Assembly: GCA_965285935.1 (NCBI GenBank)
Contig: OZ260663.1
Location: 18,042,001-18,106,000, forward strand
Direction of reading: 5' to 3'
DNA length: 64,000 bases
Source of the DNA: Ophelia neglecta
Taxonomy: Eukaryota
Below the pieces are notes generated by a model. That model ran no database searches. It worked only from the letters and a program-made list of their open reading frames with translations, and was not told the DNA's origin. The translations under genes and the position numbers were made by a program. Below, piece after piece: positions 13,176 through 64,000 of this stretch (position 1 is the first letter of the stretch; the number at the start of each line of letters is the position of its first letter).

Positions 13176-13264
13176 TATTTTGAACTGCCAAGGTCAAAGG
13201 TTATAGAAAACAGGTCATTGGAAGACCAACATTAGAGACCAACAGACATGTTTCGATATATATA

Positions 13265-19757: not shown

Positions 19758-32555
<12,798 letters not shown>

Positions 32556-37628: not shown

Positions 37629-40600
37629 TCATTTAAAGTTACCATATCGCTCGTTCTTTTTCAAGTAATCCATTGCTAGGGTATGAAGATATTTGTACTG
37701 GCCCTGCAAAATACAAATATCTTATCTAGACAGGCTTTGAATTTTAGGTGGACACGGTTTTAATTAGACTCTCAAAAGGAAAAATGATAGGGAACACCCT
37801 CAGCGTTCTAAACTAATGCGGATAAGGATAATCATGCTAAAAGGATTGATAACTACCATATCTTCGACAAACTGGTGTCTGTGTAGAGCGACAGCCCTGA
37901 CAGCCAGGAAGACGTCCACCTCCCTGTCTGTCTTCATCTTCTCTAGCATATGGTAGGCCGCACACAGCAGCCCACTACGATGGGCTCCGTCTCTAAAGTA
38001 GTAAAATGCCTTAGTTAGAAATAAAACTTATGCATGAAAAACTATTTCAACTTCTTGACAATAGCTAAAATAAGACGAAATAAAGAAAAACTAGCACGAG
38101 TTGGTCTTGTCACCAGCCAAAGAGTTGTTTTTTGACCTTAGGGATGCGTTTAAGTCGGCAGTCAGAATAAATCATGTAGAGTGTGCGAAATAATAATTGT
38201 TTGGCCATCAATGCGATGTCTTTTTATTGTTTTATTGAGACATACAATATTTAAGTACGCCATTCGCTTAAGATCCCCCTCAGAGAAGTGCACACCACAG
38301 GGAAGTTGTATTGTTGTTGTTTGGGGTTTTACGTGATTTTCAACACTTATCGGTCATATCGCCCAATGCCCTCTTTAGAGTGCTGCCTCACTGGAGTACC
38401 TGCTATAGACACCAGACAAGGAACCCCACCTAGTCACATTATACTGACACCGGGTTGACCAGTGCTGAAACTACCCCCGAAATACCGGGCGCCTGGCAGG
38501 GGAGCTATCAGTACCTATTTTTACGTCTTGGGTTTGACGCGATCGGGATTCGATCCCTGATCTACCACTTGCGAGGCGGACAACCTAACCACTCGGCCAC
38601 GCTTTGGTGGGGCAGGTAAGGGAAAGGGAAAGCCTAATCCCAATAAAGCCGGAGAATATTTGTTTCAGGCTAAACCAAATGTAGCTTATACGACAATAAA
38701 ATTCACCGATTACCTGCACAAGACGGTGACCTTTCCATCCTGCTCTTTCTGTTGCCATTTATCAACAACCTCCAGTGTATCGAGCATTTCATCCTTGTCC
38801 GGCAGATCTTGCTCGGATGTCCACTTGTTGAAAAACATCAGACTGACTACCAATGGTTGCTCGTTTGTCTGATACAATTTATAATTATCACTGATTAGTT
38901 TTTATCTTTGAAAAGCTTTTTATGTATAATAATGCTATAAATATCACTCAGTTTTACTTAAATATATACCCTACCTTAGAGGTGTGAGTCACAGAAAATG
39001 TGAGTCTATCTAGGGATCTCTCTGTCCCTTGTGCAGCAATAGACTTGATTTCCAAGACTTCAAATGAAAGGACTCTGTCTTTTTCATCAGGCCAAAACTG
39101 AGGGCAATCCTAAGGGACGGACAAACGTATATGCTACACGTATAATTATATTGGCGGTTGTTAGGAATCTCTAATGCACGATCGTATCACCGTCTGGACG
39201 GTATATCTGGAAACACTGTCTTCTGTTATCAGCCTTGTCAAACTATGCAATAAATAGCTACCTCTGAAGGCGCCTCTAGAACAAACACTGTGTGACACTT
39301 ATGTTGGTATACCATTCTCCAGAAGTCTACAACCGTGTCAGGTAAAGGCAGCTGGCTGACGATGAACGCTTTCTCCTTCAGGTAACTCTGGGAAGGATGT
39401 ACAAACAGGTCAATGCTTCTCTTTAACCATCAGCTCCCCAATGCTCAGCTTACCCAACTGTATTCACTAACATAATGGTGTGAGGCGAACTCATTTGCAT
39501 TAACAGGACTTTGAATTGACTGACTCACTGTACAGTTGTATTTCACGTACTTAATTCACATTGTGGTCTAATTCGCTGATTTAATCAGACACTGTACCAC
39601 TGCCGCGGAACGCTTATTTTATATATCAATATATAAGTTTTACAATAATAGTCGTTTTATACACATACATCAATCAGTATGGCATTAATGTAGTCGTTCC
39701 TGTCCTTAATGCTTCCAGACAGATGTACACGGCGACCATCCTCTATGAAACAACATTAACAAGGTAATAAAGGGAACTATAAACTCTACAAGCTACATAT
39801 CAAAATCATCTTTAGTTTTTTGCCTGCTTTGCACCTCTGAGTTATCGTAAATGTAAATAAAACATTATATCAACTTATGATTAAGTCCTTACCTGGTACA
39901 ATATCCAGGTTCCTGTTCTTATTAGCGTTTTTAGCCCTCAATCCTGATTGGGCACCGGGCGCCTTGCGTCTTTTAAACCTTGTTAGAGTCTGTATATAAT
40001 GTGCATGAAATAAACATGCTATGGTTGGTCTATCGTCGAAAAGTTTATGGTAATACGGTAGCTGTTGCCATGTTATGTACATTTTCGTCTAAACCCGGCG
40101 TAAATTTTACTATTTAGTGAACACGTAGCAAATCAACCAACTTTCATAGTTATTACTATCTTAATTATATAGATACACCATACAACTATAAAATCATTAA
40201 CATATTTTAGATGAAGCTGTGTTATAATTTATTTTGCAATAACAGGTAAGTGTTGCAGACCTGATATTGTTCTTCAATTGGTGTTTCGTTGCAGTATTCA
40301 TTGCCACTAAGGAGGACCCCATACCTCTCTGAGAACAAAGTACACGGGATGGCTGTGTCACCCTGCTGGTGCGCCTCTAGCAGAACTTCGTGTAAAAATA
40401 CATACTGTGGCTGAAATAAAATGCATCCGTAAGTGGAATATTACAATGGCCAATGTTTGTAATTATATATGTTTGACGTAATTCTTTCCGACTTTGAATA
40501 TATCATCTACCAGCGTTTGGATCATTCTCATCCTCTCCTTCCTCATACGGGTCAGTTGCTTTACTACGTCGAGCTTGCCCTCCTGTTTAATTTGATCCAG

Positions 40601-43600
40601 TAATGAGTCCAAAGCCACAAAAGTACCAGACCGTCCAACCCCAGCACTGGAAGACATTTATATATATATTTAAAGGCCACCAGTCTCCTTTGCACTAATA
40701 TTTGTGCACCTCGGAATTCAGGGCATTAAATAGACGACCTACCTGCAATGGACGACCATTGGCCCAGTGCTCTCGCGATCAAACGATCTTACTTTTCTCC
40801 TGAATGACAGCAAGGGAAACGCCTCGTCTGGACAGTCTTTATCGGGCCAGGAGAGAAACTGTAAATGCTTAACTTCTCTTGTTTCTTGCTATGGATTTGC
40901 AAAAAGAACATTGACAAATATAAACGTGCAAAACATATTTCCGCGAAAATTAATTTCATATCTTTACCCAGTTTGATGAAGACATTTTACACTAATAACC
41001 TTCATTCATAATTGAATATCATAAAGTAATAAAACCTGTTTCTTCAGCTTGATGATCGTGAGATTGAAGTTTGCGTATTTATCCCTTATTTCAGTCGATA
41101 CAGTAATGTTACCGTAGGTCTGTTCTTCACCAACATCCGTTGGCCAATATTGCTCACACTTTTTCTAAAAAAATGTTTGAAATTTACAATAATTTGCATT
41201 TGGTTTTCGCAAAAAGTATTACCTTCTTTCATGTTAAAAACCTACGTTTTAAACGACTCATGCATGATAACTAAAACCAACTTTATAATTCAGTCTGGTC
41301 TGAAGAATAACTCACCCGCCCTAATTCAAATGTTTGTGTAAGCATTACTATTCTGTTTGAATTAAGTTCCCAAATCATTTTCCAGAAATGAAGAGTTGTG
41401 TTTGGTCTTGGGCCTTTGTGTGAAGCAAAACATATTATATAAAAAATGTAAATAAAGTGTGACTGTAATACAGTATAACGTAAACGACTGCCACTTTTAG
41501 TATAACAAAATATAATCATGTCGTTAGATAGTGTACCTTGAGTTGCCACATAGTGTTTTTCTGTGTTCGGAAATCCCTAGAATAATCAGATATACCATTC
41601 TTCTTTAAGACACAAGTCATGTATTAGTAATATTAGCTAGCCATGTTTTTATGATGAATATTACATCGCTACAATTTAACTGAACTAAAATATCCGAATA
41701 TAGTGTTTATTTGATTTTTTATATTAAGGGGTCGTATTGTGACGTAGTAACGGCTCCTTACAGTAATGTAACTGGCGTTTATATAATCTGCGGAATCAAC
41801 GTCTTCTAATACCACCCTGTTGTTGTCATCTGAAAGATTTTCGACACAATTGTTAATGAAAAACGGTCTTCGTTATTTGCACTAAATTGATGAACAGCAT
41901 TGAGGGTAGAAAACTACATCAATTGCAAAGAGCCTCCCCCCTCCTCGCTAAAGCTAGGGTTTAAGTTCGGTTTATTTGATATTTGGAGAGCGAGCTGTTA
42001 AGGAATTAGGTGAAATGGAATGTGTAACAAATTTGATTTGATACTTACAAGGTTTGATATTTTTAAACCTATTCTTATCAACGTTGTCCTTCAACCCACC
42101 AATTTTATAATTTGTACCGATTACCTCTGGAATTTCCTAGATTGAAAGGAGGCGAGATCATTTATTATTTAAGTGTGCTATTTTAATATCAAGTTGTTAA
42201 CCAATACCAATGAAGCATGCATGAATTCTCGGATTGGAGTTGGCTACCGGAATCCATATCAATGCACCACTCCTACCTCAAATTCCTTTTTAAATCCATT
42301 CCTTGTAAACTTCTTTGCACCAATGTATTGCTCAAGGTCCTCAACCCTTACGTAAGTGCCGGCCAAAACAAAGTCAGCGGCCGGAAAAGTGACGTACGCA
42401 GTCTGATCGAGTTCGGGTTTTTCGGATGCCTTTTCGGAAACCAGTCCTGTCACCGGTTTCTTTGGTATAGTGGGTTTTGTTGTGGGTGATATTTTCGAAA
42501 CGATACCTGTCGTCGGTTTCTGTGGTACGGATGGCTTTTTCGTGGCTGTTATTCCGTGAATGGTTGTTAACATTAAAACGGTGAATAAAAAATAACATTC
42601 AAACGGTGAATATTTAAACAAATGATGTTTAAAAGTGTGGAAAAAACCCGAAAATCTGTGTATATTTGCACATAGCTGACATTTTTATCATTTATGAATA
42701 TGAATACATTGGACCTTTATGTTTACCTCTGTTGGGTGCATCCGATTTCGGATTTGCTGGCTGCTCTGCGTCACGTTGTTGGTTATTGACATCATTTTGA
42801 GTTGAGTTATTACTCGTATATGAATCTGCAATTAAAGCATCATGTGTCCTGAAAGAAGGTATTTTTGCATATAATGAGAAATGACAATGCTATCACAGGG
42901 GACATCAAAACACATTAATACTTCTATTGTGACGAAATGTGTACCCCCGGATATTAATTTCAAACGTATCAGTTGTTCTAACCAAGTAAGTCAGTCTTAT
43001 CTAAGTATGAAATGATTATGACAAACCGTCTCCATCCTTAGCAATAGGATCGGACCTTCCTCTCCTGCAATCATTCGGTGAAATTGAGCGTGAGTACATT
43101 AGATTCAATTGCCAGAAAAAAATACTCGATCATCAGCAGTGTCCACATTCTATGATGAATTAAATTTTGCTTCTTTGGTCACAATTATTTAGTTCTAAGT
43201 AACATGCTCAATAGAAGAGCAAACCGATATGTTAACCTCATTTGCGATAAAAACGGGTTACAGAGGATAAATTTGTCCAATACTGATATCTAAGTATTAG
43301 GAGCACCAATTTCTAAGATATCGCTTTACCTGCATCTGGGAATGAAGACTGCAAGTATGACCACTAGAGCTATGAGGAATATGCCTCCAGACACACAGCC
43401 AGCTATCAGAGGAACATTTTTTGCTGGTTTGTCCGTAGTACTCACTGGAGAAGTTATCATTCTATGAATAATGGTGGAGTGGCACAATATCAATTAGAGA
43501 CACACACTTAATATTAATTATTCTAGACCCATTGACCAGTGTATCAAAGGAGAAGAATCAATTGACTTTCAATTTCACATTACTACACTGAAAAGTATGA

Positions 43601-46600
43601 GATATAGGGGCCTGTGAAGATATACCAATATCAATACTACTTGTAAATGAAAGGACCAATCTATGTAGTGGCTTGATTAGATTGAAATAGAATGTCCCTC
43701 ACGGTATTGCCTGTAAACAAAATACCATGCCTGTATACAGAATTCCAGGTGGGCTTCATTATCAAGTTCCACTATATAAATATTTCGTAGAGGAGGGTGA
43801 GTCTGGTTAATATGCACTCACAATAAAACATGCGAAAATTCCTCATCACGAAATGTAAATGAGCACATTGTATACTTCCAAATTTACCTATTCAAGAGGT
43901 GCCCTTTCTTTAGAGGCGACATTTTTAGTTGCATTGTTGGTCACAAGTATCAGTTTTATTGTACTGCAATTGTTGGAATTTGATGTAACGATCATACGTA
44001 GCAGCTAATGCCGATCAGAAATACATTGACCTCCGCCTTGAGAAGGGTGCTTATTCCTGTAGCTAGTGTGGTAAAAATATAACCACACCATCGGAAACGA
44101 TACTTACTGTCAAGACATATGTAGCTAATATTGCTAATTTAATTGTTCAACAATTATGTCAGGTATAATAAGCAAAATACTTATGTGTATATTAGTTTTG
44201 CAAACTGCAATTAAACTGCATAGAGTGTCGATGACAAGGCTATTACGAATGACTGATCAGTTTTCCTACCACTGAATAGGTTTATTATTTACTAGATACA
44301 ATGGGCTAAATTTGTGAATACACTGCTCAACAATCAAGCTACTGAACCAAGCACTCAATGTGATAGAAAGACACTGTCCTTTACCCAGTGTCCCAAATAA
44401 TTTCTTCCTACTATCTCCCCTTCTATAGAAAAGTCAAATGAAAATTATATTTTGTAACTAACCTGGTATTGCTGTTGTAGTAGCATTTACAACACCTGTT
44501 TTCGTTCTGCTCTCCTCGATACTACCATTAAGATGACGTCTTAATATGACCATTTGAAAATAGTATGTCATGCTTGGTCTGAGTCCTTCAACCAGGACCT
44601 GTCTCTGCCAGAGGAATGTATCGGTCCTAGTTCTCGTGTGTATTAGTAGCGTATCATTATACTCTGATACGTATATTCCTGCTCCATAGCGATGTGTCAA
44701 ATTGGGCAGAATGTTGTCATATTCGTTCCACTTCAGGGTAATGCTGTTGGTTGTCATATTCGTGACTGTTGGTATATGTTCTTGGTCGGATATGACGTCG
44801 ACATACGCTTCGATAAAAACACAAGCCACGTAAAATTCAAGAAAACAAGGTTAACCAAGCGAGTAAATAAAGTTTTATTTTATCATCTTCAGTTCAGTTC
44901 ATCATGAGCGGAATAATACATCTTTTTTGTAGATTATCATTTAATGCCATATAACATCATAGTTTCGGAGTTTGGGCCTCGTTGTCTTACGTATTTCTCC
45001 GTCACATTGCTCCCCGTAGTACCAGGTCTGGTATTGAGGTTCGTTACATCCCGACTTACAGCTCCCGTTGTTATTATGACATACATCTGGGTGGTTGTTT
45101 TGTAAACAGTTCTCACTACAAGAATAGCGACAGTTGTCTCCGTAACGACCAGGTTGACATGCTGATAAAATAATTCAAAACAAAAAAGACATTAAATAAA
45201 AATGTTCCATCGGTGATCATCTGGTTGGGCTAATTGTAGATGTACGATTTTGAGAAGTAAGATAGTTACGTTCGGTACATGCTGGATACAATATTCCAGG
45301 ATTACATCTGCTACAACCAGTAAGGTCGTTACAAGGGTTATGTTGGGGACAGGCAGCGCAGTCTGGAGAGGAACAGAGATGAGCAGTGCTAACAGACGTA
45401 AGAAACAATATCAGTTTTGACGAGAGTGGTTTATAACAAAACCCCGATGCTGCCTTTTATTCTATGTATTCACATGTAGTTTACAATAGTCAGACAGCAT
45501 ATATAATCAAGTGTCACCTCTTCTCTATTCCAATTGCTGTGGATATAACCGTTCTAAAGGTTGATATTTCATATATTGTTTCAATTTTTTTGATCTTTTG
45601 CTCGCCTATACATCTATTTCATATCAAAAGACGAGTAACCCTTTTGTTGCTGAGTGACTAGTCTTAAAATGTAGATAAATACTAGCACCAACGTGGAATT
45701 CATAATAATCTAGCTGTCATTCAATCCGCCAATGTTGCAAGCTGCAAAGAAAATCCAAATGTACCTATTGGTTTATATCCTTGCACGACTGCTTCACAAA
45801 TACTCATATATTCTTTTTCAAATCCGTCGTCATCCCTGAGGATAGAGACGTATCTCCCAGTGACAGGTCTGTCACACACTATGATATCATGACCACCTGC
45901 GGGTACCGGGCCTTCATACTGTTTACATAGCGCAGATTGATACACGTCACTTAAATTTCCTACACCCAAGCGGAATGCACCTAAACGTTCTGGTAAAAAT
46001 ATAGATAGCTTATTATCTGCTATAGGAATTGCAAAAGAATATATTGCATCGTCACTTAATATTCAAACATAGCCATGGGGTCATTAAACTTATTAAAGAT
46101 ATTCATATGGTATGGACATTGTATCTGCTGCAAATATAGTAAAATATATATATTATTCGTTCTATACAACAGTGAATCAAGTTAAGCTATAACAAGGCAC
46201 CTGTGCCAAAAACATATCTGACAATTGAAATGATCATGTTATAACATTCATGTTATTTAATTGTCTTATTTAATCATGCTCTGCTCGACACAATTTTAAT
46301 TTTAAAGACTTACTATATGCCGTATCGGTGTCGAAATATTTATTCCTGTTATAAAGAGTGACACGGACTACTGTGTATTGCTGTCCGAGATCCACGTACC
46401 ACCAGGCTTGCTGAGGCCTAACAAGTAGCTGTGGGTGTGCACAGTGTAGATTATTAGTGCTGATTTCACCATCAACGGCCAGGTTGGCACCTAGCTCACC
46501 ATATGTGTCGCTTTGAAATGCTTGTTTATTGAGAGCGAGGTTTCCTGAAAACAGACTCAGATTGTAATACCAGCTTGGTAATCTTGGTGAATAAATAATA

Positions 46601-49600: not shown

Positions 49601-50484
49601 AAATTAGACATAAAACCAAAACCCCACAAATTGTTTATTATTCAGTGTATTTTATATACAGCAAACAGATAAATTATCTGCAATCAATGGCGATTTTTTC
49701 TTAATAAACATATTGCAATACCAGTGATGGAATTGAGAGATTTGTTCACACAGCGCTTAAATATGGGGAGCGATATGGTGCCAGTATTCGATTTTTAGTA
49801 GGCGGTGTAGTAAACAGCCTATTTTCTCTGCGAAACAATTATGTTGTATGTGACAAATTTTATATTTGAACGTTTGTCAAAAGTAAATTCAATGTTATTT
49901 CGGAGTTCATATTGAATGTTTTCCAGGAATATTGGGGGAAATGACTTCATTGGCCTTAAAAATTCAAACATATTAAGTCATCCTCCTCACCTATTTTACA
50001 CCCTGGTCCTGATCTCCGTATGCCGGCCTCAGTTGGGTTGTCAAATGGACACTCTTCCCCTTGTAGACAATTACCGGACGTCTGGTTACAGCCATTGGTA
50101 CACGGACATGGAAATACGCATCCTGGATCATTTCCGAACCGGCATAATTCTGTCAGAAATCATGATACAAGGATTGGGTTAACCGCTAAAAGTCTACCTT
50201 AAGGTTTAGTCTGATCCAATGTGTAGACTGCAATGGGGTCTCGAAAAAGGCTGTTATATTACAATGCTGAAATTCCTCATTACGTCAAGAACGTTAAATC
50301 CGTATATAAGAAGTTCTCTGATTAAACTACATGCATATTAATTACATATAGTTCAGCAAACGTCTTACTCAGATATATAAATATAGAAGACACATTCTTT
50401 GAGATAATACCTACCGTTTTGTGCACCAGCGAAACACAAGACATGTATTCCTACAAATATCACAGATAATTTGAATGCCAACAT
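37629..50484 (-). CDS. Receptor-type protein tyrosine phosphatase, gene B: signal peptide - EGF-like - F-type lectin - EGF-like x2 - FN3 - TM - Pro-rich juxtamembrane - PTP D1 - PTP D2
   Basis: Exons: 50415-50484 (MLAFKLSVIFVGIHVLCFAGAQN), 49991-50149, 46314-46544, 45765-45989, 45270-45362, 44991-45161, 44463-44807 (FN3: SITLKW...LVEGLRPSMTYYFQM), 43330-43444 (TM), two short exons, 42277-42545. The PTP exons have the same boundaries as gene A (KNRF, DYINAS, SWPD, VHC|SAGVGRSG, MIQT; D2 VLCRDGAHRSG). The last exon is GQYKYLHTLAMDYLKKNERYGNFK*, stop at 37629-37631. Confidence 0.91.
38309..38602 (-). mobile_element. tRNA-derived SINE (apparently full length) in an intron of gene B
   Basis: The minus-strand head has an A box (TGGCCGAGTGG) and a B-box-like GATCGAATCCC. 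The central CCGGTGTCAGTATAATGTGAC resembles the Meta-SINE core (from memory). It ends in a (CAA)n tail. Confidence 0.8.
47441..48530. mobile_element. ~1.1-kb segment present in gene B intron but absent from the homologous gene C intron; probable transposon
   Basis: B/C intron homology breaks after TCTAGTCTGA (47440 vs 63493) and resumes near 48540 vs 63505. The segment carries repeated GTTACCATGG(C/T)AA palindromic motifs (~47702, 48067, 48246). Confidence 0.55.
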
Positions 50485-51989
50485 GTCGACCAGTCATAAC
50501 AGTCTTCTGAGTCGTTTAAATCACTGAATGTAATGTGTACCTAGAAAAATAGGAAATCAGTTTACTAGTTCGATTAATTAGACTCTTACCACTTCATTTA
50601 CGGCATTTGTTAATTTATATTACAAATTGGAAACACTCTTTTCTTCAGTGTTCTCATGTTAACATTAAAGACAAGGCTTGCAGGCATTTCGCTGAGTATC
50701 TGTGACCGGCAATGTAAGCATATATTGTGTTAGGTGAAGGGGAACGCATACCTGATTTACATAACTGACATAAAAGTTATTGTGTGTTTGACTTAGTATC
50801 GATTGAATCTAACAACCTTTGCAGTACCAAGATACACGATAAAGCGCAACTTGCCTTGGACAGTAAAGGCGCGAACTTCAAATAAGGCCATACATACATA
50901 GTGTCGACCCATTGTTACACCAGACTACTGTCTTACATATACTGTCTTATACTTGTCCAGTCGATCATGAAAAAACAGTATATCACTAGGAAATGTGCCT
51001 GCTATATGTATTTTTTGTGATGTTTGGCTTATCATTTGACATAGAAAGAAAACCGCACCCCAAATACCCTTGTATGTTAAACAAATCAGTTATGTGGAAC
51101 TCCAAACAAGGAATTTGCTGTGGTTCGTGTTAAAACTAGTTCCTTGGAACCTGTCAGGGGCTTGTCAGTCTCAGTTACTGCCTCTTAGGTCAAACAGAAG
51201 GGAATGCAATTCATGTGGTCTTCATTCTCTATCGTTCCTAATACTATTGCATAAAAAATATTCTCAAAATTTGTGTACCGGGTGAGCTCAGATCTTTAAA
51301 AAGCGCAATTGCAATAATAAGCTTAATCTGGCCGTCAATTAATAAACTGTCATTAGCGGGTTATATACTATTTGGGAGCTGGGGATTGATGTTTGTGGTG
51401 TTGCAGCTGGTAGTTGCCGGTGATTTCACCACTATTTTATTGACTATTCTTGATTAATGATTATACATTGTCTCTGGGCATCGATCCCGTGTTTATGTAC
51501 AGAAGTACCCCTGTTTGCAATATACTACTATTTAACCTTTATATGATTGTATGGGACGCTAAATATTAGATGTGGCAAGCATGCTATCGCATGATCCTTA
51601 TTCACAGTGTTATGAATTTGCCAGCAATTTACGTTTTTAAAAGTTGGTAGGCCTTATCTTGTTGCAGTAAGGGTTTCTAACGATTAGAAATACCGTTTAG
51701 TAGCTCATTCAACTCATCATGGCATACGAATATTACTTTAAGAATTAAATGTCTTGGCTGATATCTACGCTTTTTTTCGATGGCAATTTAAAAAAAAAAA
51801 AAAATAGGTCTGTTAGCATTTCAAAGCTACCACACGCCTAAGGTAACTTAAGCTCGTCCAGTGGCAGCTCTTCATAGAATGTGAAAACATTTTAAAATTA
51901 AAGGTGTATCCCATCGGATACGATATCTTTGCCCTTTGATCGTTTCTCAATCGAAATAAAAAGTTCTGCAAAATATAGATCAGCAAAAA

Positions 51990-52708
51990 TAAGCAAATAA
52001 TCTAGATGACTATAGTATTTTGATCAAGAGCTTCTAACTGGCTACATTCATGCCAAATTTTACGAAAACCGGTCAATAAACAGCTGAGATAGAGCAATTT
52101 GAACTTTTCAAGGTCATGGCGTGACCTTGATTTTTAAAGTACATCAACCAGATTAAATAAGTCCCAAGACCTTCTAACTGTCTACATTCATGCCAAATTC
52201 TACTCGAATTGCTTAATTGTTGAAGTTTTCAATGTCATGGTGTGACCTTGATTTTTCAAAATAGGTGAAAAAGATTATAATTGATCAAAACAGCTTCTAT
52301 CTGGCTACATTCATGCACAATTTACATTCATGCACACTTTAACGGAAATCCTTCCATAAACGGCTGAGATACAAGCGTTTGAAATTTTCAAGGTCACACT
52401 TTGACATTGACCTTTCACAATAGGTCAACCCGATTATTTTGCACAAATGATTTTATAACTGGCTACATTCGTACCAAATAATATGGAAATTGTTCAATAA
52501 TCAGCCGAGATATAGCAATTTTAAATTTTCACGGTCAGCCAAAAGGTAATGGTCTTCAGCCATTGTCCTATTCTAGCTTCTCACCACATTTCATCGAAAT
52601 CGGCCCAGTGATTCTTGAGATATCATGCGGACAGAAGCACAGACACACACACAGACACACACACAGGACAAAAAACATAATATTTGCCCCCTATGGGGCA
52701 ATGATAAT
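51990..52708 (+). mobile_element. Helentron/HINE-like non-autonomous element with internal tandem units
   Basis: Four ~120-160-bp units anchored on CTGGCTACATTCATGCCAAA and AAGGTCA..TGACCTT (~52038, 52178, 52301, 52459), then a (CA/CAGA) microsatellite and a terminal hairpin TTGCCCC-CTAT-GGGGCAA at 52684-52701. Confidence 0.6.
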
Positions 52709-53184
52709 CACAAGAATCCATGCCTACCTTCGATTTGCCCGGGTATGAGCATACCTGCTCTCATCCTTGCAAAATCAGGTAGAAATGACCATCCTTGGAA
52801 GGATACCCGGACAAAAATACTTGTCATATTACGTACATATACATATAACTGATGCACCATCTGGTTGTCTCGGTAAAATAATGATTTATTACATTGACTG
52901 AATGACTTCTAAATGTGATTGAAATGGCACACACGTATACATTCTGGAGACAAATATAACCCACCTGTTTGGCCAATATTAGGAAGGAACTGTTGTGTTC
53001 CTACAACAATTATAATGACATACAATATCCACATCAAGACAAGACAAGCCAGTCCAAGTAAATAGTTGAATAAATCAAACAACGTATTCAACCAGCTTGT
53101 GAGATTGCTTCCTTGTTTATTTTTAGAAGCTACATGTATGTTCAACAGTCTATACGTTCATGCCTTGTTGCACACATGTATCTA

Positions 53185-54066
53185 TAGGGTGGCGCAGAAA
53201 AATCTGTGCCTCTGTGTAGATGGTATGTGGTGTGAAATAAATAACCGTGTGCTTTATTTGATGTTTTCTTCTCAAAGCTATAAACATTTGGCCACGAATG
53301 GTTTATATATGAGATCGTCACATTAAAGAAATAAAGAATTAGGTCGATTTTGCTTTTGGTCTCAAACCATGTCCTGCAATGGCGGTTCTTCCTTGTTACA
53401 GTAACTAATAAACCAATATTGAAGGAACTAATCTTTCACTAGGTAACGGTGAATACAAACAAAAACGGAATGCTTTGTAAATGCCTGAGACGACATGGTC
53501 AATGACGCCATTACATGTGTTGGCGGGAAATCCGTCTTTCGCACTTATCTCTACTATTATTATTTAAACAATCTGTATAATCAAGTTTTGCTATCTGTTT
53601 AATGTATATCAGTAAGCACTTATTTGAAGTCAGCACAGGTAGCTTACTTGTCTGGAACTTTGATTGTTACTCGTGCTGATTTCTCAGATGAGGCATCCGG
53701 ACGCTGGCATATTTCAGGCAATGATACCCTATGTATGTATGGACGAGAAGGTGCCGGATTGGTTTGGGGCCAACTACTGATTCTAGAAAGTTTTAAATGA
53801 AAAATGTCAGAGAAAGCCAATGACATCGATTAAAAAACTTTGGTTATTAATATATGCTGACTTGTTCATCTTAGAAATGTTCATTGGACATTTTTGGTGA
53901 ATCATTTAAATATGAGATGGCCAGCTCCATCAAGCATCAGGTAAAAATCATCAAAATGTGTTTAAGGATAAATCCCTGGTGGTTCTAAAAATACAGCTCA
54001 TAGAATGCATTGCTGCTATATGAGGACGTGCTATAAGATGAGATACGCTTTTTTTGCACCACCCTG
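53185..54066. mobile_element. Non-autonomous Tc1/mariner-type element (~880 bp)
   Basis: ta|TAGGGTGGCGCAGAAAAA ... TTTTTTTGCACCACCCTG|ta: imperfect TIRs with TA flanks. No transposase ORF seen. Confidence 0.6.
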
Positions 54067-55888
54067 TATATGGTAGAATTTTAACGTCTTCCTACCTGTC
54101 GTGACTTATAAAAAAAACATCTGTCTAGATGCGTGTTGTCAGGGGGGCAATGTAGTGATAAGGTTTAAAAGGCATAAAGGCATGTAGGATTGTAAACAAC
54201 ATCATACTGGCGATAACGATAGTCTTTATAATAGTGCCTGGTTTTCATGCAGGTCCTCTTGCCAGAATTACCCTATGATGAAAACTCAGAAAGAGTAAGC
54301 TTGTTGTCGGGAGATAAATGAAGTTATCCGCCTTTTGGACACATTCGATATGCAGCAGCTAAAAACACCGAAGAACTACCAATATGTATAACTGATCACC
54401 CGGGCTTCTATCCATTCTGGATGAATAGGCATTCCTTGACTTCAGGTTACAACCCGTTCAAACAGATTTTATGATGTACACGTATCACTGTCAGTCAATA
54501 AAAAAATACTTCACCTTGGGTTAATGTTATGTACATAAGTTTCTCTTCTCAGTTTTTTGTTCTTCATTTAAATTTCTATTGAAAGGCAGTATCTGTCTGC
54601 ATGTTGAACGAAAAATGCACCCTTTTCTCTCTCTATTGTATACTGGAGGGGGGGGGGGGCGGCTATTTAATTGATGTGTGTGTATGTGGGGGAAGGAGGG
54701 GGGGGGGAATAAAAAGTATGTGCCTATTCATGAGCAGCGGGGTAGGGGGGTCATTAATATTCCTTTTACTTTGGTGGTGCTTGTGTTAGTGGCTATGTGT
54801 GCGTATATGTCGGGGGTTGGGGAGTTATTTTTATTGTGTTACTATAAATGGGAGGCGGGGGAGGGGGGGTCATCAATATTTCTTTTTCGATGGTGATCAG
54901 TGTGTGTGTGGGTGTGGGTTGTGTGTGTGTTGGGGGGGGGGGGGGGTGCAATGAAACTCTCTCGCACCCCAAACCATTTCCAATAGAAGATCCTTTTGGA
55001 CTTCATAGCCAACATTATTTCACTGTTTTGATATACACTTAGTTTCTATAATGACCTAGTTCTGCCTTTAAACGCAGCTGTTTTGACACTCCTAGCGAAA
55101 TATAGTGCACGTGGACAATAAGGGCTTATCATTTACTATATTGCCAAAGACATGTTTATATTTCGATTTATATTTGTTTTTGCTTTTATGGCATAGTTTG
55201 CACTGTAACTTTTTATATATGTGAAAATATAGGACTGTTTTTTATATATTAGATATAAATTGAACAAAAGGTGTGTTGCAATAGGCAATACTTTAGATTT
55301 AAGCTTCCTAGTAGGTGTCACTCCTTTAATAATTAATTAACATAAATAGTACATCTTACGTATATTTCTACTGAAACATGGTTCTCATGAATTAATAGAG
55401 TAATAATTGTTGATAAACATAGTACATGTGTATAAAAGCATGCCTGCTCTTCCTGTCCAAACCTTTTATACAGTAAGTATCAGTTATGGCAAGTTTGATT
55501 TAGTTTGATGCCATTTGCAGCAGACATTTATTATTCTCTTCACTGTTGTTTCATAAGCCACAGCGAATAAAGAGTTAAGAGCTATTTCATAAAAAAAAAA
55601 GGTTTGGGGAAGAAAAACATATTCGGAATTCGAGGGGAGGGGGTGGGATGCCTCAAAGGATTAAAATTAGGGTCGAAAGACATTGAAGTCGATTTCTAAT
55701 TTTCTATATTGATATTCGCCGACATGATTTTCCTTCAAACGTTAAAATGGGCCTGTTTTATCCACACACTTATCCGTCTCACTTCTAGTGTTGGTAGAGT
55801 GGTAACCCGTTAGTGACACTAGGCCTACATTTCACTTGTAACAGAGCATCAATTATTGCAAATTATGATACATTTCTGCACTTGAAGG

Positions 55889-56280
55889 TACTGTAAAATC
55901 CTTAAATTTCGCGACCCTTTTATTCCGTGAATTGAATGGGCAGAGTCAAAACAGCAAAATTTAAGTGCTCGCGATAATTAAGGACCTTGGAAAGGGTGTT
56001 GACAGTAGCTTTAGAACGCCAAAATAAAGGTAAGCGAAATAAAGTGAAACCTGTAAATAAAGACCACCAAAGGGACTGGAGAATAATGGGTTGATTTTTT
56101 TGAGGTGGTCTGTTTAGACAGGTCATCTTACATTGAAAGTATATAGCATACTCATCATATTGGTGGTCTTAATTGACAGGTAGTCTGATTATAGAGGTGT
56201 TCTTTATGGCAGATTTCACTGTAAGTTGAAGGTCAAACCCACGGATATTTAGGGCCGCGAAATATAAGGGGCTGGAATAG
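55889..56280. mobile_element. Nested MITEs: CAGTGAAACCTG-family copy (56042-56221) inside a TACTGTAAAATCC...CGCGAAA-type element
   Basis: The outer left end TACTGTAAAATCCTTAAATTTCGCGACCCT is mirrored by AGGGCCGCGAAATATAAGGGG on the right. The inner element is ta|AAGTGAAACCTG...CAGATTTCACTG|ta. Confidence 0.6.
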
Positions 56281-59200
56281 GGTCGGATAAATAAATCCTA
56301 AATCGACATCGGGAAAACTTTTAAAATCGAACTTCGTTATATAATTAAGGAACCGAGGTCTGACCAATTTCTAAATTCAGGACTTCAGGACTCGGGGGCT
56401 GGCCATATTCTTGGTGTGGGAGAAGGGGGGGGGGATCAGAAGTTTGTTAAATCTTTGAAGTTATATTAATTTTTCTGATGAAACAGCATTTTGACCATCT
56501 GCTAAATGGCAAGACATTTAGCATGTTGTCAGTGTAGTTACTGAAGTGAGTGAGAGCAGGGAGGGTTTTTGCAAGGAGGAGTGCCCCTGGGGGAAAATAC
56601 CATATTTTACCCGCGCAAATATGATCGAATTTCATTACTTTTTTTTTAGCTAATTGGGGTTATTTGGCTTCTCTCCTTGAAACATTTAATACTTAAGAGT
56701 GAAAATACGAGAAGAGGGGCATCATTTGTCTTTCCTGCCAAATTTAAACAATATTTAAAAAGAGTGTGTTCCCTTTCAGTGTTCAATGGAGGGTCATGTA
56801 CTAAATGTTGTCCTGCCAGATGTTCCACATATGTGAGAGCTCAATTCCTGGTAAATTAAGGGCACAGACATTATTTGAATCACGAGGAGGACAATTTGAA
56901 ATGGATATTTTCCTGGTTCCCAGTGGATACTATTATTCTGTATTGGGTATATATGCAGCTTTTTGTCGTGTGAAAGATATTCAACATGTGAGATTATTAT
57001 GTGCCTCTGGGCATATACTTCAATTGTGAATAAATAATTGAATATATAAATTCCTAAGGATACCTTTACCTATATGATTTTATATATATACCACTACTTC
57101 ACATTCAAAATTGTTTAAACACAACTAACCTCAAGTTATGGTCATAAATTACACTACTAATGTGGCTAAAACTCTTAGACAATAGGCGAATTTATGCTAA
57201 TGAACAACTTTCTACAATATGTGTCTGACCGCTATTGAACTGGGTGAACGTGTGTGTGTTTAGACTCAGTCCTGTGTTTGTCTGGTTTGCTCCCATAGAC
57301 AGACGATAACACAGATGTGGCTAGACTTAATGCTCATTTTTATACGCAAACCCGCAAGCTATTTTCTTTCTGGTATCATTTAACTGGCCTGCTATAAAAA
57401 ATCACTAAACTAGATTGGGAAAATATTACATTTGTACTTTTATTCACTCAGTTTACATCATTTGTGCAAACGTTAGATATCAATGTTGATACAATTTGTG
57501 ATAAGTTGGACTGGTATCCAAATTACAGGCAACAAATATACATCCGTTGCACTAGCGAGGTGGCGAATTCCTCCCGCCCGAGAAGCGGCGGCGATCTCCA
57601 AATTTAGGAATGAAACCGTCATTTTTTCCTACGTTTTGAACTCGGATCGATCTTATACTTTTACACATTATTCAGGTATTTGTTAGGCACACATTAATAA
57701 TAACACGTTATCGTTGTTTATTATTAATTATGAGACATTACCATTAGGAAAGCTTCATTTTACGTGGGCGATAAAACAGCCTAACCACTGAGTGGTGACG
57801 TTAGAGCCTTGGCGAGAGTCCACAAAAGAAGGGGCAGTCTGCTAATGATGAGCCGATTGGTAGTGTTTCCATTTGGTACATACAGTATACGATCTGTACA
57901 TGTTCATTAGTGACGTAAAGCCGGGTGGTACGATTATAATGATTAACCTTTAAATGCACTTACTAATACATATTCCCCCCAAATAGCTAAATTCCAAGAT
58001 TTGACTACAAAAACGTGTATAAAATGTTTATTTTGATCATATTGTTTTTCGAGAAAATTGGATAAATATTGCGTAGCGTGACGAAAGTCGGCAAATACAT
58101 ATCGGCCAGCTTCACAAGCATAAGTAGTATTACCTAGCAGTCTTCTGGTGCCGATCACTGTTATAAAATACACATACTACCCGATAAGACTTAACTGAAT
58201 ATTTTACATACCGTCAAATTATTATCGATTATTAAAGTTGCAATCTATAATAAGAGTAGGAGGAGGGAGGAGGAGGGGGGATGAAAAAGGGAGGGGGGGG
58301 GGGTGCTTTAAGATCTGAAAATAGTCTCGGATGGGTTGTCGAAATCGGTGTATTAACTATAAAAAAAATCAGAGATCTATGGCAGTGCTTAGAAGTGTAT
58401 AAACCTAATGTAGATACATGATTAAATGAAGTCAATATTGGGGTTTCTACTCATGTTAGGCCTGACCATACTGCCTATCAGGCCGACAGAGCCTACCTAC
58501 ACATCTATTTCAGATATATGGTATACTTGGAGAATTTCTTCTCAACCGATCCAACCCCCCCCCCCCCTCCCCAAATGGAGACGTTTAAATTGGCGCTGTG
58601 AGAATTAAATACCCTGTTGTTTGACTCCAAATAAATTAGTGCGACTAGCTGTACAACAATACCACTTGGATAGTCACTATCACTATCCTACAAAGAGCTA
58701 TGATTTTTTTCGATCAAAATATCATTTGGAAACTCTTGTTGTACAAAGAGTTTTGTGCTTTTTTTTACCAAGACATGAGGGCCATTATACCGGGTTACAT
58801 TGAAAAGCTGAAGAGCCAACGGGAATTTTTGTATGTTTTCTGGTCTCCGTCTGTCCCTGTCAGTAGCTTTTGGTTGTCTGACCGACTATGGGCGGATCTG
58901 ATCACATGTATCTTTAATAGGTATCAGTCATTTGATATTTAATAATCACCATTGGCGTCGTCGAGATAAAGTAGTTGTAGCCTATAAATTTGTAAAACAG
59001 GAACTAGTACTAAAGTTTGCATTGTGTATTATTAAACCCTTTATGTATTGAAGGGCCTCATTGGCCCTGGCAAGGTTAATATCCATGTACCATTGATCGG
59101 TCATTTGTACATCAAATACTGACGACCTTATGAAAACTATTTTTCGTCAAATGATCAGGAGTATCACATTTGGTGTTGAACATTTATTATTATGAAATTA

Positions 59201-59764
59201 ATGCACATTTTAACAAGATGAATTTGCAAAGCTTATTTATAAGTTGGATCAAAAGAATATAATTGACATATTTTTATGCTATAACAACGAAGAAAAAATT
59301 AAGGATGTTGTATCAGTAAACAAATAATTTGGATCTCACAATACATATTGATTATATAATGGAACAAATAATGTCATGTTTCGGGTAACATGGTGAATTA
59401 TGGCTCCCGAGGGTTTATGTCCCACAGCGCTGTCTGTGACTCTCGATCTGCGGCCTCGGGATAGAGTACTTAGTGGCATATTCCCCAGGGGATGATTATT
59501 CGCCCTTTTGCCCTACATGGCAGTCATTATTTGCTTACTTATGTTATTAGTGATTCTGTGTTTTTATCCCCTATAAAATACGCAAATCAATGAACGTTGG
59601 ACAATGCACTCTGTTAGCCGACGGCACACTAGAAAACCATCAATCCGCCTTTTACCAGTACAAACACATAAAAAGACAATTCTACAACATGCGATTATAA
59701 AGTACTTTTATACTTAGCACAAATACAAGATGTATTAATAGACAAAGAGTCAGTTGTCAACAAA

Positions 59765-62672
59765 TTAGCTTTGTTTGACCTTTTTATCATCGACTTGACG
59801 CAGATTTATCTCTTCATAAACCCCAGCTGCCTGGAGTCCAGCGTACACGTGTACGTTAGGAGTGTCTGCTCTTTCATTCCCTAAATAATAAATACAGCAA
59901 ATTTTAAAGGTTTATCATTTAAACAAGAGAAACCTTTCGAAAGAGCATACTTTCCCTTACATTATATCATAATTTGAATTAAACGTATTGGGTATGAACT
60001 TGTCCGAACAGACAATGTAGAATAAATTCACCGTAAATATTGGCTGTATTAGGCGTATCATATGTTACATGCTCCTGGTTTGATTGAAGGTAACTAACGT
60101 CTTCTTCAGGTAAAGTGTCCTGGTTTGATATATTTCCTTCATTTTCCTTGTTCATTTGCAGATTTTTTTTCCTTGATCCCCTCAATCTGTAGGATATTGG
60201 CTTTAATTAAGCACGTTTTTCGATGTTATGTGAAAACCATATACACCAATGCCTGCAGTATGCCTATGAACGTTAGCTTGGAGTACATGACTCCGATATT
60301 TTGACAAACACGTTAAAGGTCTTTCTAGGTAAATGTTGCTTTAAAATGTTCATTGAACTGCAATTGATATAAAACATGTTCGTACCTAAGGAGTAATATC
60401 ACTACAGTTATACCGAGAGCCAGGAAGAGCACACCGCCAACAACACTGCTGATTATCAGTGTAATGACTCTGTCATCGTTTGATGTGGATTCTGCCGTGA
60501 AAATGCTTGGTATCAATAATTATCAATTTTCGTTTGTTTTTATTCCATCGTTCACTGAATAGTTTGAACTTTGATACTTAGATCAGTCTGTTAATGTATA
60601 ACATACTTACCTGGTATCGATGATGTAATGGCATTTCCCACACTTGTTTTCGTTCTGCTCTCCTCGATCGTACCATTAAGATGACGTCTTAATATGACCA
60701 TTATAAAATAGTATGTGATGCTTGGTCTGAGTCCTTCAACCAGGACTTGTATCTGCCAGGGGAATGTGTCAATCCTAGGTCTCGTGTGTATTAGTAGCGT
60801 ATCATTATACTCCGATACGTATATTCCTGCTCCATAACGATGTGTCAAATTGGGCAGAATGGTGTCATATTCTTTCCACTTCAGAGTTATGCTGTTGGTT
60901 GTTGTGCGGTCGACTATTGGTATATGTTCTTGGTGGGACATTACGTCGACATACGCTTCGATAAAACACAAGCCATGTTAATTTCATATAGAAAGTAAGC
61001 TTTACCAAGAGAGTAATTGAGATTAAGTCTTATTTAATCATCTTAAGTTTAGTTTATCATGAGCACAATAACATTTTTTTTTTAGATTATCATTTAGCGC
61101 CATTTCACATCATCGTTTTGAAGTTTGGACCTCCTCGTTGACTTACGTATTTCTCCGTCACATTGCTCCCCGTAGTACCAGGTCTGGTATTGAGGTTCGT
61201 TACATCCCGACTTACAGTTCCCGTTGTTATTATGACATACATCTGGGTAGTTGATTTGTAAACAGTTCTCATTACAGGAATATCGACAGTTGTCTCCGTA
61301 CCGACCAGGTTGACATGCTGATAAAATAAAACAAATCAAAATAGACATTAAATGAATGTTCCATCGGCGATAATCTGGTTGGGCTAATTGTAGAACTACG
61401 ATTTTGAGAAGTAAGATAGTTACATTCGGTACATGCTGGGTACAATACTCCCGGATTACATCTGCTACAACCGGTAAGGTCATTACAAAGAACAAGAGCG
61501 GGACAGGCAGAGCAGTCTGAAGAAGAATAGAGGGAAGCAGTGCCAACAATCCCCAGAAAACAATATCAGTTTTGACTTTATTTGTTTATAACAAAGCTTT
61601 TATTCTGATATTTATCCCATTTGTAGCTTTCAATAGTCAGCCGGCATAAACAATCAAGTTATTCAAGTGTCATATTTTCTCTGCCAATTACTGTGGATAT
61701 AATGTTACTAAAGGTTGAAATTGCACATATTGTTAATTGTTTTGATCTTTTGCTGGCATGTACAAAAGACGAGTAACCCTTTTGTGGCTGAGTGTTAAGT
61801 CTTAAAATGTAGATTAATACTGGCATCAAAGTGGAATCCATATTAATCTAGCTGTCAATCAATCCGCCAAATGTTGCAAACTGCAAAGAAAATCCAAATG
61901 TACCTATTGGTTTATATCCTTGCACGACTGCCTCACAAATAGTCATATATTGTTTTTCAAATCCGTCGGCATCCCTCAGGATAGAGACGTATCTCCCAGT
62001 GACAGGTCTGTCACACACTATGATATCATGACCAGCTGCGGGTACCGGGCCTTCATACTGTTTACAGAGCGCAGATTGATACACGTCACTTAAGTTTCCT
62101 ACACCCAAGCGGAATCCACCTAAACGTTCTGGTAAAAATAAAGATAACTTATAATCTGCTATAAGAATAGGAAACTTATATATCGTCCATTAATGTTCAA
62201 ACATAGTCATGGGGTCATTAAACTAAGATATTTATTTGGTATGGACATTGTCTCTGCTGCAAATATGTCTATAGCAAAACATATATATGTGTCGTTCTAT
62301 AAAACAGAGACTAAAATTAAGCTATAACAAGGCACCTGCGCCAAAAACTTATCTGGCAATTGAAATGTTCATATTATAAATTCATGTTATTTAATTATTC
62401 AATCATGCTCTGTTCGACACTATTTCAATTTTAAGACCTACTATATGCTGGATCGCTGTCGAAATTTTTCTCCCTGTTATAAAGAGTGACACGGACTACT
62501 GTGTATTCCTCCCCGAGATCCACATACCACCAAGCTCGCCGTGATTCATCCAGTAGCCCTTGGTGTGCACATTTGAGATTATCAGTGGTGATTAAACCAT
62601 CAACGGCCAGGTAGGCTCCCAACACACCAAGTGTGTCACTTTGAGATGCTTGTTTATTGAGAGCGAGGTTTC
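59765..62672 (-). CDS. Gene C (5' exons beyond window): F-type lectin - EGF-like x2 - FN3 - TM - short tyrosine-motif tail, no phosphatase domain
   Basis: Exons 62442-62672, 61904-62128, 61424-61516, 61147-61317, 60611-60955 (same sizes as gene B: 231, 225, 93, 171, 345 nt), then 60386-60491 (TM), 60032-60186 and 59765-59880 (stop TAA). All are GT-AG and phase-consistent. Tail: RLRGSRKKNLQMNKENEGNISNQDTLPEEDVSYLQSNQEHVTYDTPNTANIYGNERADTPNVHVYAGLQAAGVYEEINLRQVDDKKVKQS*. Confidence 0.88.
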
Positions 62673-64000
62673 CTGAAACCAGACCCAGATTGTAATATCA
62701 GCTTGGTAATCTTAGTGAATGAAGTTTATGTTAATGTTTTTTTTTTCTAAAATGGAGACTGAATTATCTTTGCTATATCTAATATCAAAGACGGATATTG
62801 GGCCTAAATTTGAACGCACCATGAACATTTATCACTTAACGCGAAATGACATTGAATTTGTTTGGCACAAAAACATTCCCGTTATAACGAAACTCTGTAT
62901 TTCCGTTCATGTCATTTGGCATGCGTGCAGTAAAACCTGTAATACAGTGTTGCGCTGTTGACAAACAGAATATTAAATTTATTTCAGGAGAGGTATCTAT
63001 TGAAAGAAGCAATGGTCCCTTTCAGTCGCAGAGTCTATTGAAAGAAAGAAAGTTCCCTTTCAGTTGAGATGTCTATTGAAAGAAAAAATGATCCCTTTCA
63101 CCTGAAATGTCCATTGGCCTGGTGGCGAAACAAAAAAATACAACAAAAAAACAAATCACTTATATGCACGCTTTCTAACACGTTTGAAGTGATTTATACT
63201 GCAACATTAAATGTCCCACACATGTAACAATGATATGCACATAATCACTCTCTGATTTGCCAGCATATTAATTCAATAACTTAATAACAAACAGTGTTCG
63301 TATGGACGAGCTTTAACGTTTAGCGATTCTTTGCTTCGTTATTTGCTTAGTTCTGGGATCTCTAATCCTTGCTTTGTTAAAGGACCAAGTAGCATCCACT
63401 CACAGAGTACACATCTATGTCATTTGTACAATGCGATATTGGGAGACATACTAGGGCTATGGTGTTTTGTTTTTGTCTCATTTTCTAGTCTGACTAATTA
63501 GTATGTACGCTATCATTCGCAGCCACGATGTAAACCACAAGATTCATTTGATAAACGAACCTGAAAAGTTCGCTAAGTGGTGATTGTATCTTTTTCATCT
63601 AGATATGACCAATATTCAAATGAAACTTTAAGTGTTGCGTTCTAAACTAAGATAGATTGGAGTACAATTAATCATTTAAGACAAATAAATCTACATTTTG
63701 CTGTAAAATAAAACACAAAGCGAAACGTATTAACTGAACGAAATTTCATTTTTATCCATTGGCATTATTTGAATATGATTATGCACACATGTCCATCCAT
63801 TTAAGATTAACACAAGAAAATAAATGAACCAATTAAAATAAGAATAGTATTATTGTGTATCCCCGTATTTTGAAGGTGTTTAACACCTGTAATGATGTTT
63901 AAGAAAATGAAGTAGCGTAACTCTGGGCCAAAATCCACTATTGTATAAACAATGGGGCCATTTTGAATTAATGAAAATAACAACATTCCAATGTGAAGTC
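60611..64000. repeat. Segmental duplication of the gene B ectodomain region (44463-49012), including introns
   Basis: Colinear exons and alignable introns, e.g. AAACAATGGGGCCATTTTGA at ~48967 and ~63947. Homology stops right after the FN3 exon donor. Confidence 0.9.

Follow-up and report, generated by a model that had tools for sequence, protein, structure and literature searches.

The wiring of one binding domain to opposite signals is regarded as a hallmark of vertebrate innate immunity and its arms race with pathogen mimicry, and Draper-I and Draper-II of Drosophila form an on/off pair of isoforms. The vertebrate paired receptors, e.g., Siglec-5/14, Siglec-11/16, KIR, LILR/PIR, SIRP, and CEACAM, are encoded by clustered genes that present similar ectodomains on alternative signaling modules, and gene conversion in the ectodomain has been documented for Siglec and CEACAM pairs (PMC5701461, PMC4042635, PMC2832619). 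The oyster receptor CgIgR carries a double YxxL/I tail that has been shown experimentally to recruit Syk and to drive phagocytosis (PMC6994640). For F-type lectins, a review from 2017 names CCP, CTLD, pentraxin, FA58C, and transmembrane (TM) segments as partners and does not mention a phosphatase. The current study concerns a window of 64,000 nucleotides from Ophelia neglecta (GenBank assembly GCA_965285935.1, contig OZ260663.1, here C5, positions 18042001-18106000), in which the genes A, B, and C all lie on the minus strand. An initial annotation had proposed that B and C are a pair of lectin receptors with a common ectodomain, one ending in a receptor protein tyrosine phosphatase (PTP) and the other in a tail resembling an ITAM (immunoreceptor tyrosine-based activation motif).

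Judged from their sequences, B and C are intact-looking members of a large tandem and actively recombining family of type I membrane receptors. The genes of this family share a layout of signal peptide, F-type-lectin-like head, two Cys-rich modules, one fibronectin type III (FN3)-like module, and a homologous TM segment, to which one of two apparently interchangeable cytoplasmic modules is joined, i.e., a tandem PTP (P type, e.g., B) or a 90-aa tail with four tyrosines (S type, e.g., C). Labels L021 to L040 denote paralog loci or stretches of the same genome, and all database searches were run one exon at a time, without joined spliced models. In the limited collection of literature on F-type lectins or fucolectins with receptor phosphatases, ITAMs, paired receptors, or invertebrate expansions, this architecture is not described.

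The five ectodomain exons of B and C are equal in length (231, 225, 93, 171, and 345 bp), their borders are all AG/GT with every intron in phase 1, and the introns between them are alignable. In a self-BLAST, positions 60605-62858 matched 44457-46758 with 84.3% identity over 2334 bp; the alignment resumed upstream (63153-64000 versus 47120-49013) and its end lay a few bases at most from the FN3 donor, and the BLAST alignments of C with B and with L034-L038 all end at 60605-60609. Identity at the protein level is 84% overall, with 72% for lectin exon 1, 93% for lectin exon 2, 80% and 93% for the two Cys-rich exons, and 82% for the FN3 exon. Beyond this border, the TM exons of both genes have the same phases, a common opening (V/E)ST(T/S)(D/N), and a VxGGxxFLxAL core. 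Ratios of nonsynonymous to synonymous divergence (dN/dS) range from 0.27 to 0.62 for the individual ectodomain exons, and a value of 0.26 was obtained for the cytoplasmic region of B in comparison with its paralog at 16.66 Mb, which has two one-base gaps and may be dead; by these estimates, purifying selection acts on both modules. The differences between the two genes in lectin exon 1 fall into four patches, but overall positive selection on this exon was rejected: dN/dS is 0.62 for the exon as a whole and 0.70 for the variable patches, which show elevated synonymous divergence too. The structural part of the initial annotation was confirmed by these comparisons: five shared exons of equal size with alignable introns were recovered by self-BLAST and splice mapping, the continuation of B into a TM segment and the PTP domains D1 and D2 by a TM exon at 43444-43330 together with the PTP motifs, the termination of C after a TM segment and a tail of about 90 aa by the TAA at 59767-59765, and the lack of phosphatase exons between C and B by a tblastn search in which none of the 17 cytoplasmic pieces of B matched 46800-59765 at an E value of ≤1e-3.

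The history of C can be read from its nearest relatives, which differ along the gene. Introns 1, 2, and 3 are closest to the P genes L034/L035 (93-98%), intron 4 plus the FN3 exon to the S gene L021 (90-95%), and the part from the TM segment to the tail to the S genes L021/L023 (94-98%), whereas identity to L034/L035 falls to 78% in intron 4, and B, L023, L032, and the other S genes reach only 70-75% in intron 2b. These values portray C as a mosaic to which three or more donors have contributed. For most S genes, the alignment with C begins only at intron 2 and runs downward from there, their lectin exons being 47-65% identical to those of C; the head type of C and B is found on the S genes C, L023, and L032 and on the P genes B, L034, L035, L036, and L038, and a second head type is common to the S genes L026-L030 and the P gene L037. 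The P genes nearest to the head of C are located about 200 kb and 1.3 Mb away. Because head and introns of C are 90.4% identical at the DNA level to L034 (C5:17.90 Mb, about 200 kb off) and 84.3% identical to B, L034 is the best P partner of C, and the earlier assumption that B is its closest phosphatase counterpart was not upheld.

A second, independent case of exchange involves B itself. The block at 44000-47500, i.e., its ectodomain, is 99.2-99.8% identical to C5:16664500-16668000, which is located 1.4 Mb away, whereas the identity of the same two genes is only 88-97% in the cytoplasmic exons and introns, a pattern that suggests a recent tract of conversion confined to the ectodomain. In both cases, the mosaic of C and the paralog of B, the exchanged tracts end at the ectodomain border. 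The split between S and P genes is old, since the introns after FN3 are unalignable, and the TM exons of both types are still homologous in phase, opening residues, and the VxGGxxFLxAL core. A tree of the EGF2-FN3 segment requires one or two changes of tail type only. According to these patterns, S and P genes are still swapping ectodomain cassettes, through either gene conversion or unequal crossing-over, and the same head type is therefore found on both tails. Exon and BLAST comparisons corroborated in this way the proposal of one F-type-lectin-like ectodomain on two cytoplasmic modules.

With respect to the vertebrate paired receptors, the locus has in common with them the linkage of genes with related ectodomains on alternative modules and the conversion between the two types, which for Siglec-11/16 and Siglec-5/14, also lectin receptors, is limited to the ectodomain as well (PMC5701461, PMC4042635). 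It departs from them in that the presumed negative arm is a built-in tandem phosphatase and not an immunoreceptor tyrosine-based inhibitory motif (ITIM) recruiting SHP-1/2, that the tyrosine arm has motifs of its own without a charged TM residue for DAP12/FcRγ, that the head has by similarity an F-type-lectin fold rather than an Ig fold, that B and C are 84% and not >90-99% identical at the amino acid level, and that about 46 genes with several head types form a network. The initial idea of a two-gene pair is replaced by a cluster of this size; of the paired-receptor analogy, the Siglec-like exchange limited to the ectodomain stands, and the network and the 84% identity of B and C do not fit.

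The cluster of about 46 genes covers 2.4 Mb of C5 (16.6-19.0 Mb) and comprises 24 S tails and 22 P juxtamembrane exons. All 24 copies retrieved with the peptide of tail exon 2 are located in this interval, as are the 22 copies of the juxtamembrane exon of B, for which dozens of weaker matches were found on C7 and C16; a check of the genome for members beyond the window accordingly returned about 24 S and 22 P genes on C5. DNA of the TM-plus-tail part of C has at least 15 further copies on the same chromosome with 87-96% identity, the distant ones reaching 18.97 Mb, and about 20 FN3 exons are at least 80% identical, with about 15 S and 6 P genes represented. Broken copies were found for the FN3 exon (stop in L026), tail exon 1 (stops in L025 and L027), and tail exon 2 (frameshift in L023). 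At C5:16723600-16763000, inverted, near-identical pairs of S genes (L021/L022) and P genes (L035/L036) are arranged around a center near 16.744 Mb; they may form a large palindrome or else stem from the assembly.

Gene C has an open frame of 1512 nt over nine exons, the signal exon included, corresponding to 503 codons and a stop, and the closest AATAAA follows at 59188, 577 nt downstream of the stop. An intact copy of the signal exon homologous to that of B is present about 2.65 kb upstream of lectin exon 1, beyond the window (window-equivalent positions ~65318-65388), and a second tandem copy lies about 2.6 kb further upstream (~67940-68010); ATG and donor are intact in both (L040 2286-2465 and 4938-5090; C5:18107286-18110090). 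The duplicated unit of B and C extends at least 10 kb upstream, and the 5' flank of B at 49966-54386 has a duplicate upstream of C. The two objections under which C would not be a genuine gene, namely missing 5' exons and a haplotype artifact, were checked, and neither holds: the signal-peptide exon is present outside the window, and C does not represent a haplotype of B or of any other copy left uncollapsed in the assembly, because a DNA difference of about 9% separates it from the nearest copy and because the closest relatives of its head are not those of its tail. Phosphatase exons hidden 3' of C were likewise rejected, as the tblastn search with the cytoplasmic pieces of B was empty. In contigs of two DNA runs, 87 bp are skipped at 60461-60549 across the start of the TM exon of C, a form that may be a paralog or an allele.

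The cytoplasmic tail of C has a length of 90 aa and follows a TM segment without any charged residue. Across 27 tail copies from at least three subfamilies, the core TY(D/E)TPNTxxIYG / NE..DT..N.HVYAG.Q....YEEI.L is kept at ≥90% and spans the exon border (slash) as TY(D/E)TPNTxxIYGNE..HVYAGLQx4YEEI, while the FN3 parts of the same copies are only 38-44% and their TM parts about 37% identical. The HVYAG.Q....YEEI.L part of tail exon 2 is present in 25 to 27 of the 27 copies. Four of the five tail tyrosines of C are invariant or nearly so, the exception being that of VSYLQS, and the distances from tyrosine to tyrosine are constant (9, 13, and 9). In C, the last two motifs read YAGL-QAAGV-YEEI with a spacer of five residues, which recurs in every intact copy of all subfamilies. 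The S type resembles CgIgR of the oyster in being an invertebrate type I recognition receptor with a double YxxL/I motif in its own tail and is unlike it in the absence of Ig domains and of the canonical spacer of 8, here replaced by a spacer of 5 plus two conserved tyrosines upstream; in contrast to CgIgR and to Draper, both receptors with an ITAM of their own, the S type has its phosphatase-bearing counterpart in another gene.

Phosphorylated YEEI is the optimal ligand of Src-family SH2 domains, pYxN is bound by Grb2, and pYxxP is bound by Crk, Nck, and Abl. Tyrosine kinases with SH2 domains are present in the genome. About 20 tandem SH2-domain matches were observed on C2 (96400000-96664000), and an SH2 cluster at C12:55497000-55526000 lies inside long intronless open frames; genes for phosphotyrosine readers seem to be expanded too. 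The two top-scoring SH2 domains of the genome are encoded 1 kb apart on one strand at C8:14985110-14986370, which is a candidate for a tandem-SH2 protein of the Syk or SHP type.

The cytoplasmic region of B consists of stop-free pieces with all D1 and D2 motifs and a stop at about 37632. D1 contains the classical signature (I/V)HCxAGxGR(S/T)G, the WPD loop, and the Q loop (QT..QYVF); the KNRY motif reads KNRF, a conservative Tyr-to-Phe change, and D1 looks catalytically complete from these motifs. D2, a degenerate second PTP domain, retains C-x5-R and lacks the WPD aspartate. Two B exons matched Pfam Y_phosphatase (E values of 1e-12 and 3.5e-8), and the nearest PDB match of one D1 exon was PTPsigma/LAR D1 (E value of 6e-14). 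LAR/PTPsigma and CD45 correspond to the P type in their type I membrane topology, a D1 with C-x5-R, WPD, and Q loop, a degenerate D2, and an ectodomain with FN3; they differ from it with respect to the F-type-lectin head, the Cys-rich modules, the single FN3, and KNRF of the P genes, of which 22 copies are clustered, with more on C7 and C16, next to sister genes without a phosphatase.

Of the domain labels given in the initial annotation, those for the lectin and the phosphatase were substantiated, that for FN3 is weaker than had been stated, and that for epidermal growth factor (EGF) found no counterpart in Pfam. Lectin exon 1 of C matched PF22633 (F5_F8_type_C_2) with an E value of 4e-7 (2e-7 to 4e-7 for the head, above the gathering score) and, in the PDB, FBP32 (3CQO; 3e-6) and Sm-hPAF, the F-type lectin domain of Streptococcus mitis (3LE0; 2e-5); lectin exon 2 matched 3CQO (3.5e-4) with an alignment on the GRYV..LCE..V.GY core. 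By sequence similarity over both halves, the head therefore resembles the F-type lectin domains, e.g., those of eel agglutinin AAA, striped-bass FBP32, and the oyster F-lectins and bindin. In the ESM Atlas, the clusters nearest to exon 1 were annotated as "Fucolectin tachylectin-4 pentraxin-1" with Mollusca as the commonest phylum, which is a lead only. Variation concentrated in loop patches is also known from the F-type lectin isoforms of eel and oyster (PMC5712786). The known F-type lectins are secreted, whereas the proteins described here are, by sequence, membrane-anchored signaling receptors. A His (CAH) and the first Arg (LYNR) of the head align with the sugar-binding triad; in lectin exon 1 of the short-tail gene L032 (C5:16633300-16637700), Phe replaces this His (CAFP for CAHQ). 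"EGF" was rejected as a label for the Cys-rich exons, as no EGF model in Pfam was matched; Cys-rich exon 1 of C had no Pfam match and Cys-rich exon 2 sub-threshold matches only. The FN3 label is weak and consistent, with a Pfam E value of 9e-4 for B and E values of 0.006-0.1 for a family profile against the PDB, where neogenin, Robo, and titin FN3 domains were matched.

The coordinates of all features are compiled in the table. Gene A is the third family member in the window; in tblastn searches its lectin head was 51-57% and its D1/D2 region 55-86% identical to B, and collinearity exists between its head region and that of an S gene in the 16.65-Mb block. In the spacer between B and C, a short repeat at 56039-56226 recurs at 7545-7726, 9329-9499, and 13262-13438 with 72-81% identity and is probably a small mobile element, and a G-rich/C-rich stretch of low complexity with strong GC skew (54600-55050) gives rise to Gly-rich and Pro-rich pseudo-open reading frames on both strands. 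Outside the cluster, a match to the mitochondrial COX1 gene at C223:4697-6037 contains eight in-frame TGA codons, consistent with an invertebrate-type mitochondrial code.

Table. Features of genes A, B, and C in window coordinates
Feature	Position	Strand	Details
C lectin exon 1, first half of F-type-lectin-like domain, variable loop patches	62442..62672	-	231 bp, AG/GT, phase 1-1
C lectin exon 2, second half of F-type-lectin-like domain	61904..62128	-	225 bp, AG/GT
C Cys-rich exon 1, 6 Cys, EGF-like on visual inspection only	61424..61516	-	93 bp, AG/GT
C Cys-rich exon 2, 8 Cys, CxPGxYGxNC type	61147..61317	-	171 bp, AG/GT
C FN3-like exon	60611..60955	-	345 bp; homology to P genes ends at donor
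C transmembrane exon (…VITLIISSVVGGVLFLALGITVVILLL)	60386..60491	-	AG/GT, phase 1 start, phase 2 end
C tail exon 1 (…VSYLQS…VTYDTPNTANIYG)	60032..60186	-	AG/GT
C tail exon 2 with stop (NERADTPNVHVYAGLQAAGVYEEINL…KQS-stop)	59765..59880	-	acceptor AG; TAA at 59767-59765
Spacer, B first exon to C stop	50485..59764	.	no phosphatase exon (tblastn, 17 B cytoplasmic pieces)
B candidate signal-peptide exon (MLAFKLSVIFVGIHVLCFAGAQN)	50415..50484	-	donor G/GTAGGT, phase 1
B lectin exon 1	46314..46544	-	231 bp, AG/GT
B lectin exon 2	45765..45989	-	225 bp
B Cys-rich exon 1	45270..45362	-	93 bp
B Cys-rich exon 2	44991..45161	-	171 bp
B FN3-like exon	44463..44807	-	345 bp; Pfam fn3 E 9e-4
B transmembrane exon (V-STTDKPAKNVPLIAGCVSGGIFLIALVVILAVFIPRC)	43330..43444	-	acceptor ctccag/TG, donor CAG/GTAAAG, phase 1 to 2
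B juxtamembrane/D1 N-terminal exon	42277..42655	-	stop-free frame 42684-42262; donor 42277; 5' border not fixed
B PTP domain D1	40225..42136	-	several exons; PTP motifs
B PTP domain D2	37632..40088	-	VLC.DGAHRSG kept; W-T-S-E for WPD; ends …NERYGNFK-stop
Gene A, third family member in window, divergent lectin head and tandem PTP	19958..30054	-	tblastn with B exons

Overall, the combination of shared heads and two cytoplasmic modules would be compatible with a push-pull function of the family that resembles that of paired receptors and is organized as a many-to-many network, a reading to which we give about an even chance. According to this model, a ligand would cluster an S receptor, whose tail would then be phosphorylated by a Src-family kinase; pYEEI would hold the Src SH2 domain, the YAGL-x5-YEEI pair could dock a tandem-SH2 protein of the Syk or SHP type, and YGNE and Y(D/E)TP could dock Grb2-like and Crk/Nck-like adaptors, respectively. 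A P receptor with a related head would join the cluster and bring its D1 beside the phosphotyrosines, so that the signal is reset. In this model, the family as a whole, and not B and C as a single pair, would sense glycans as a repertoire whose push-pull control is built in. The more far-reaching proposal, that an independent invertebrate paired-receptor repertoire has arisen in which heads are shuffled between an activating tail and an attached phosphatase to obtain "go" and "stop" from one recognition event, is put forward as a tentative possibility.

Several observations weigh against a push-pull function. The canonical ITAM was rejected, as YAGL-x5-YEEI is one residue short of the x6-8 spacing and also of the wider definition of x6-12 that has been applied to oyster CgIgR (PMC6994640). 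The ITIM consensus (S/I/V/L)xYxx(I/V/L) was rejected as well, since the -2 position is occupied by H (HVYAGL) or by G or D (xVYEEI/xQYEEI), and VSYLQS and VTYDTP miss this consensus at +3; of the ITAM-like tail originally proposed, four tyrosines conserved in 27 copies are left, with the ITAM spacing missed and no ITIM. YAGL and YEEI also match the endocytic sorting signal YxxΦ. On the ligand side, the exon in which the putative sugar-binding loops are encoded shows the lowest identity between B and C (72% at the amino acid level), and the two receptors need not therefore bind the same ligand. The canonical fucose motif HX24RXDX4(R/K) with its His-Arg-Arg triad (PMC5712786) is not present in the head as such: the distance from His to Arg is 29, the Arg is followed by E-K and not by x-D, the next basic residues are at +11/+12 and not at +6, the CDR4-like loop after the first Arg is about five residues longer, and both the Cys-Cys bridge and the acidic residue of RxD are absent. 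Because the motif is only partly kept, sugar binding by the heads can be regarded as no more than plausible. In gene B, the splice from the TM exon (phase 2 end) to the D1 N-terminal exon is ambiguous, with one stop-free, phase-compatible direct acceptor at 42655 and many two-step paths. Receptor phosphatases such as CD45 can activate Src kinases and do not only switch signals off, and the role of the P form as an off-switch is therefore an assumption. A search of public runs for the locus returned only genomic-like holders and no RNA runs, and the three sequencing runs that contain it (one sample, one study) are DNA-like, with introns and spacer covered equally and no splice joints. A HMMER search of the whole library with the FN3 exon of C yielded 10 weak matches only (E values of ≥5e-8), the named ones being bacterial or metagenomic FN3 proteins, and thus no relatives outside the genome. 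Finally, since several family copies are broken, part of the cluster is decaying.

Three other explanations have to be considered. If the S genes encoded lectin receptors for endocytosis or scavenging, YAGL and YEEI would be clathrin-adaptor signals rather than docking sites for phosphotyrosine readers, and the heads would be common to both types solely through the same binding need. YxxΦ is matched by both distal tyrosines, with L or I at +3, many lectin receptors are generally known to internalize their ligands, and the missed ITAM spacing would be accounted for, but a sorting signal needs one YxxΦ only, whereas four tyrosines with conserved flanks are kept at a fixed spacing of 9, 13, and 9 in 27 copies, YGNE and Y(D/E)TP do not fit YxxΦ, and textbooks give YEEI as the best ligand of Src SH2 domains; we therefore regard this explanation as unlikely. 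The absence of any functional coupling, with common heads as a mere by-product of the birth and death of clustered genes through conversion and unequal crossing-over, S and P receptors at work in different cells or processes, and C as perhaps a young, minor chimera, would be in line with the patchwork of at least three donors in C, with a cluster of inverted, near-identical duplicates and several broken copies, and with the lack of RNA among the public runs that contain the locus. Against it stand the intact 503-aa frame of C with canonical splice sites, dN/dS values below 1 in every ectodomain exon of B and C, an S tail that is old and strongly constrained, and conversion tracts that end twice independently at the ectodomain border, which fits selection for shared heads, and we judge it improbable.

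It is also conceivable, if quite improbable in our estimation, that the P form is a co-activator, whose D1 strips the inhibitory C-terminal phosphate of Src kinases and primes the S tail in the manner of CD45 or RPTPalpha. A complete D1 followed by a degenerate D2 is the layout of CD45 and of LAR-type enzymes, and the role of CD45 as an activator of Src kinases is established; the equal size of the S and P ectodomains suggests, however, that both would co-cluster on a ligand and not be segregated by size, which would favor direct dephosphorylation of the S tail. The sequence itself favors neither direction, activation or switch-off.

If the push-pull reading of the family is true, the logic of vertebrate paired receptors would also be realized in a protostome-grade animal, with a head of lectin type, a phosphatase built into the receptor, and a tail with several tyrosines of its own as its different parts, and would be maintained by the same genomic process as in vertebrates, i.e., gene conversion of the ectodomain. 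Under the tentative proposal of an independent repertoire, a go/stop reading would be achieved without ITIMs, SHP recruitment, or chains of adaptors, as another molecular route to what the KIR, Siglec, and LILR systems accomplish, and may serve immunity, symbiont control, or self/non-self recognition. The YAGLQx4YEEI core provides a concrete candidate docking motif. Even without functional pairing, the cluster is a clean case in which two receptor classes exchange cassettes of compatible exon phase; with it, one of the large and so far unexplained expansions of receptor tyrosine phosphatases in marine invertebrate genomes would be given a function.

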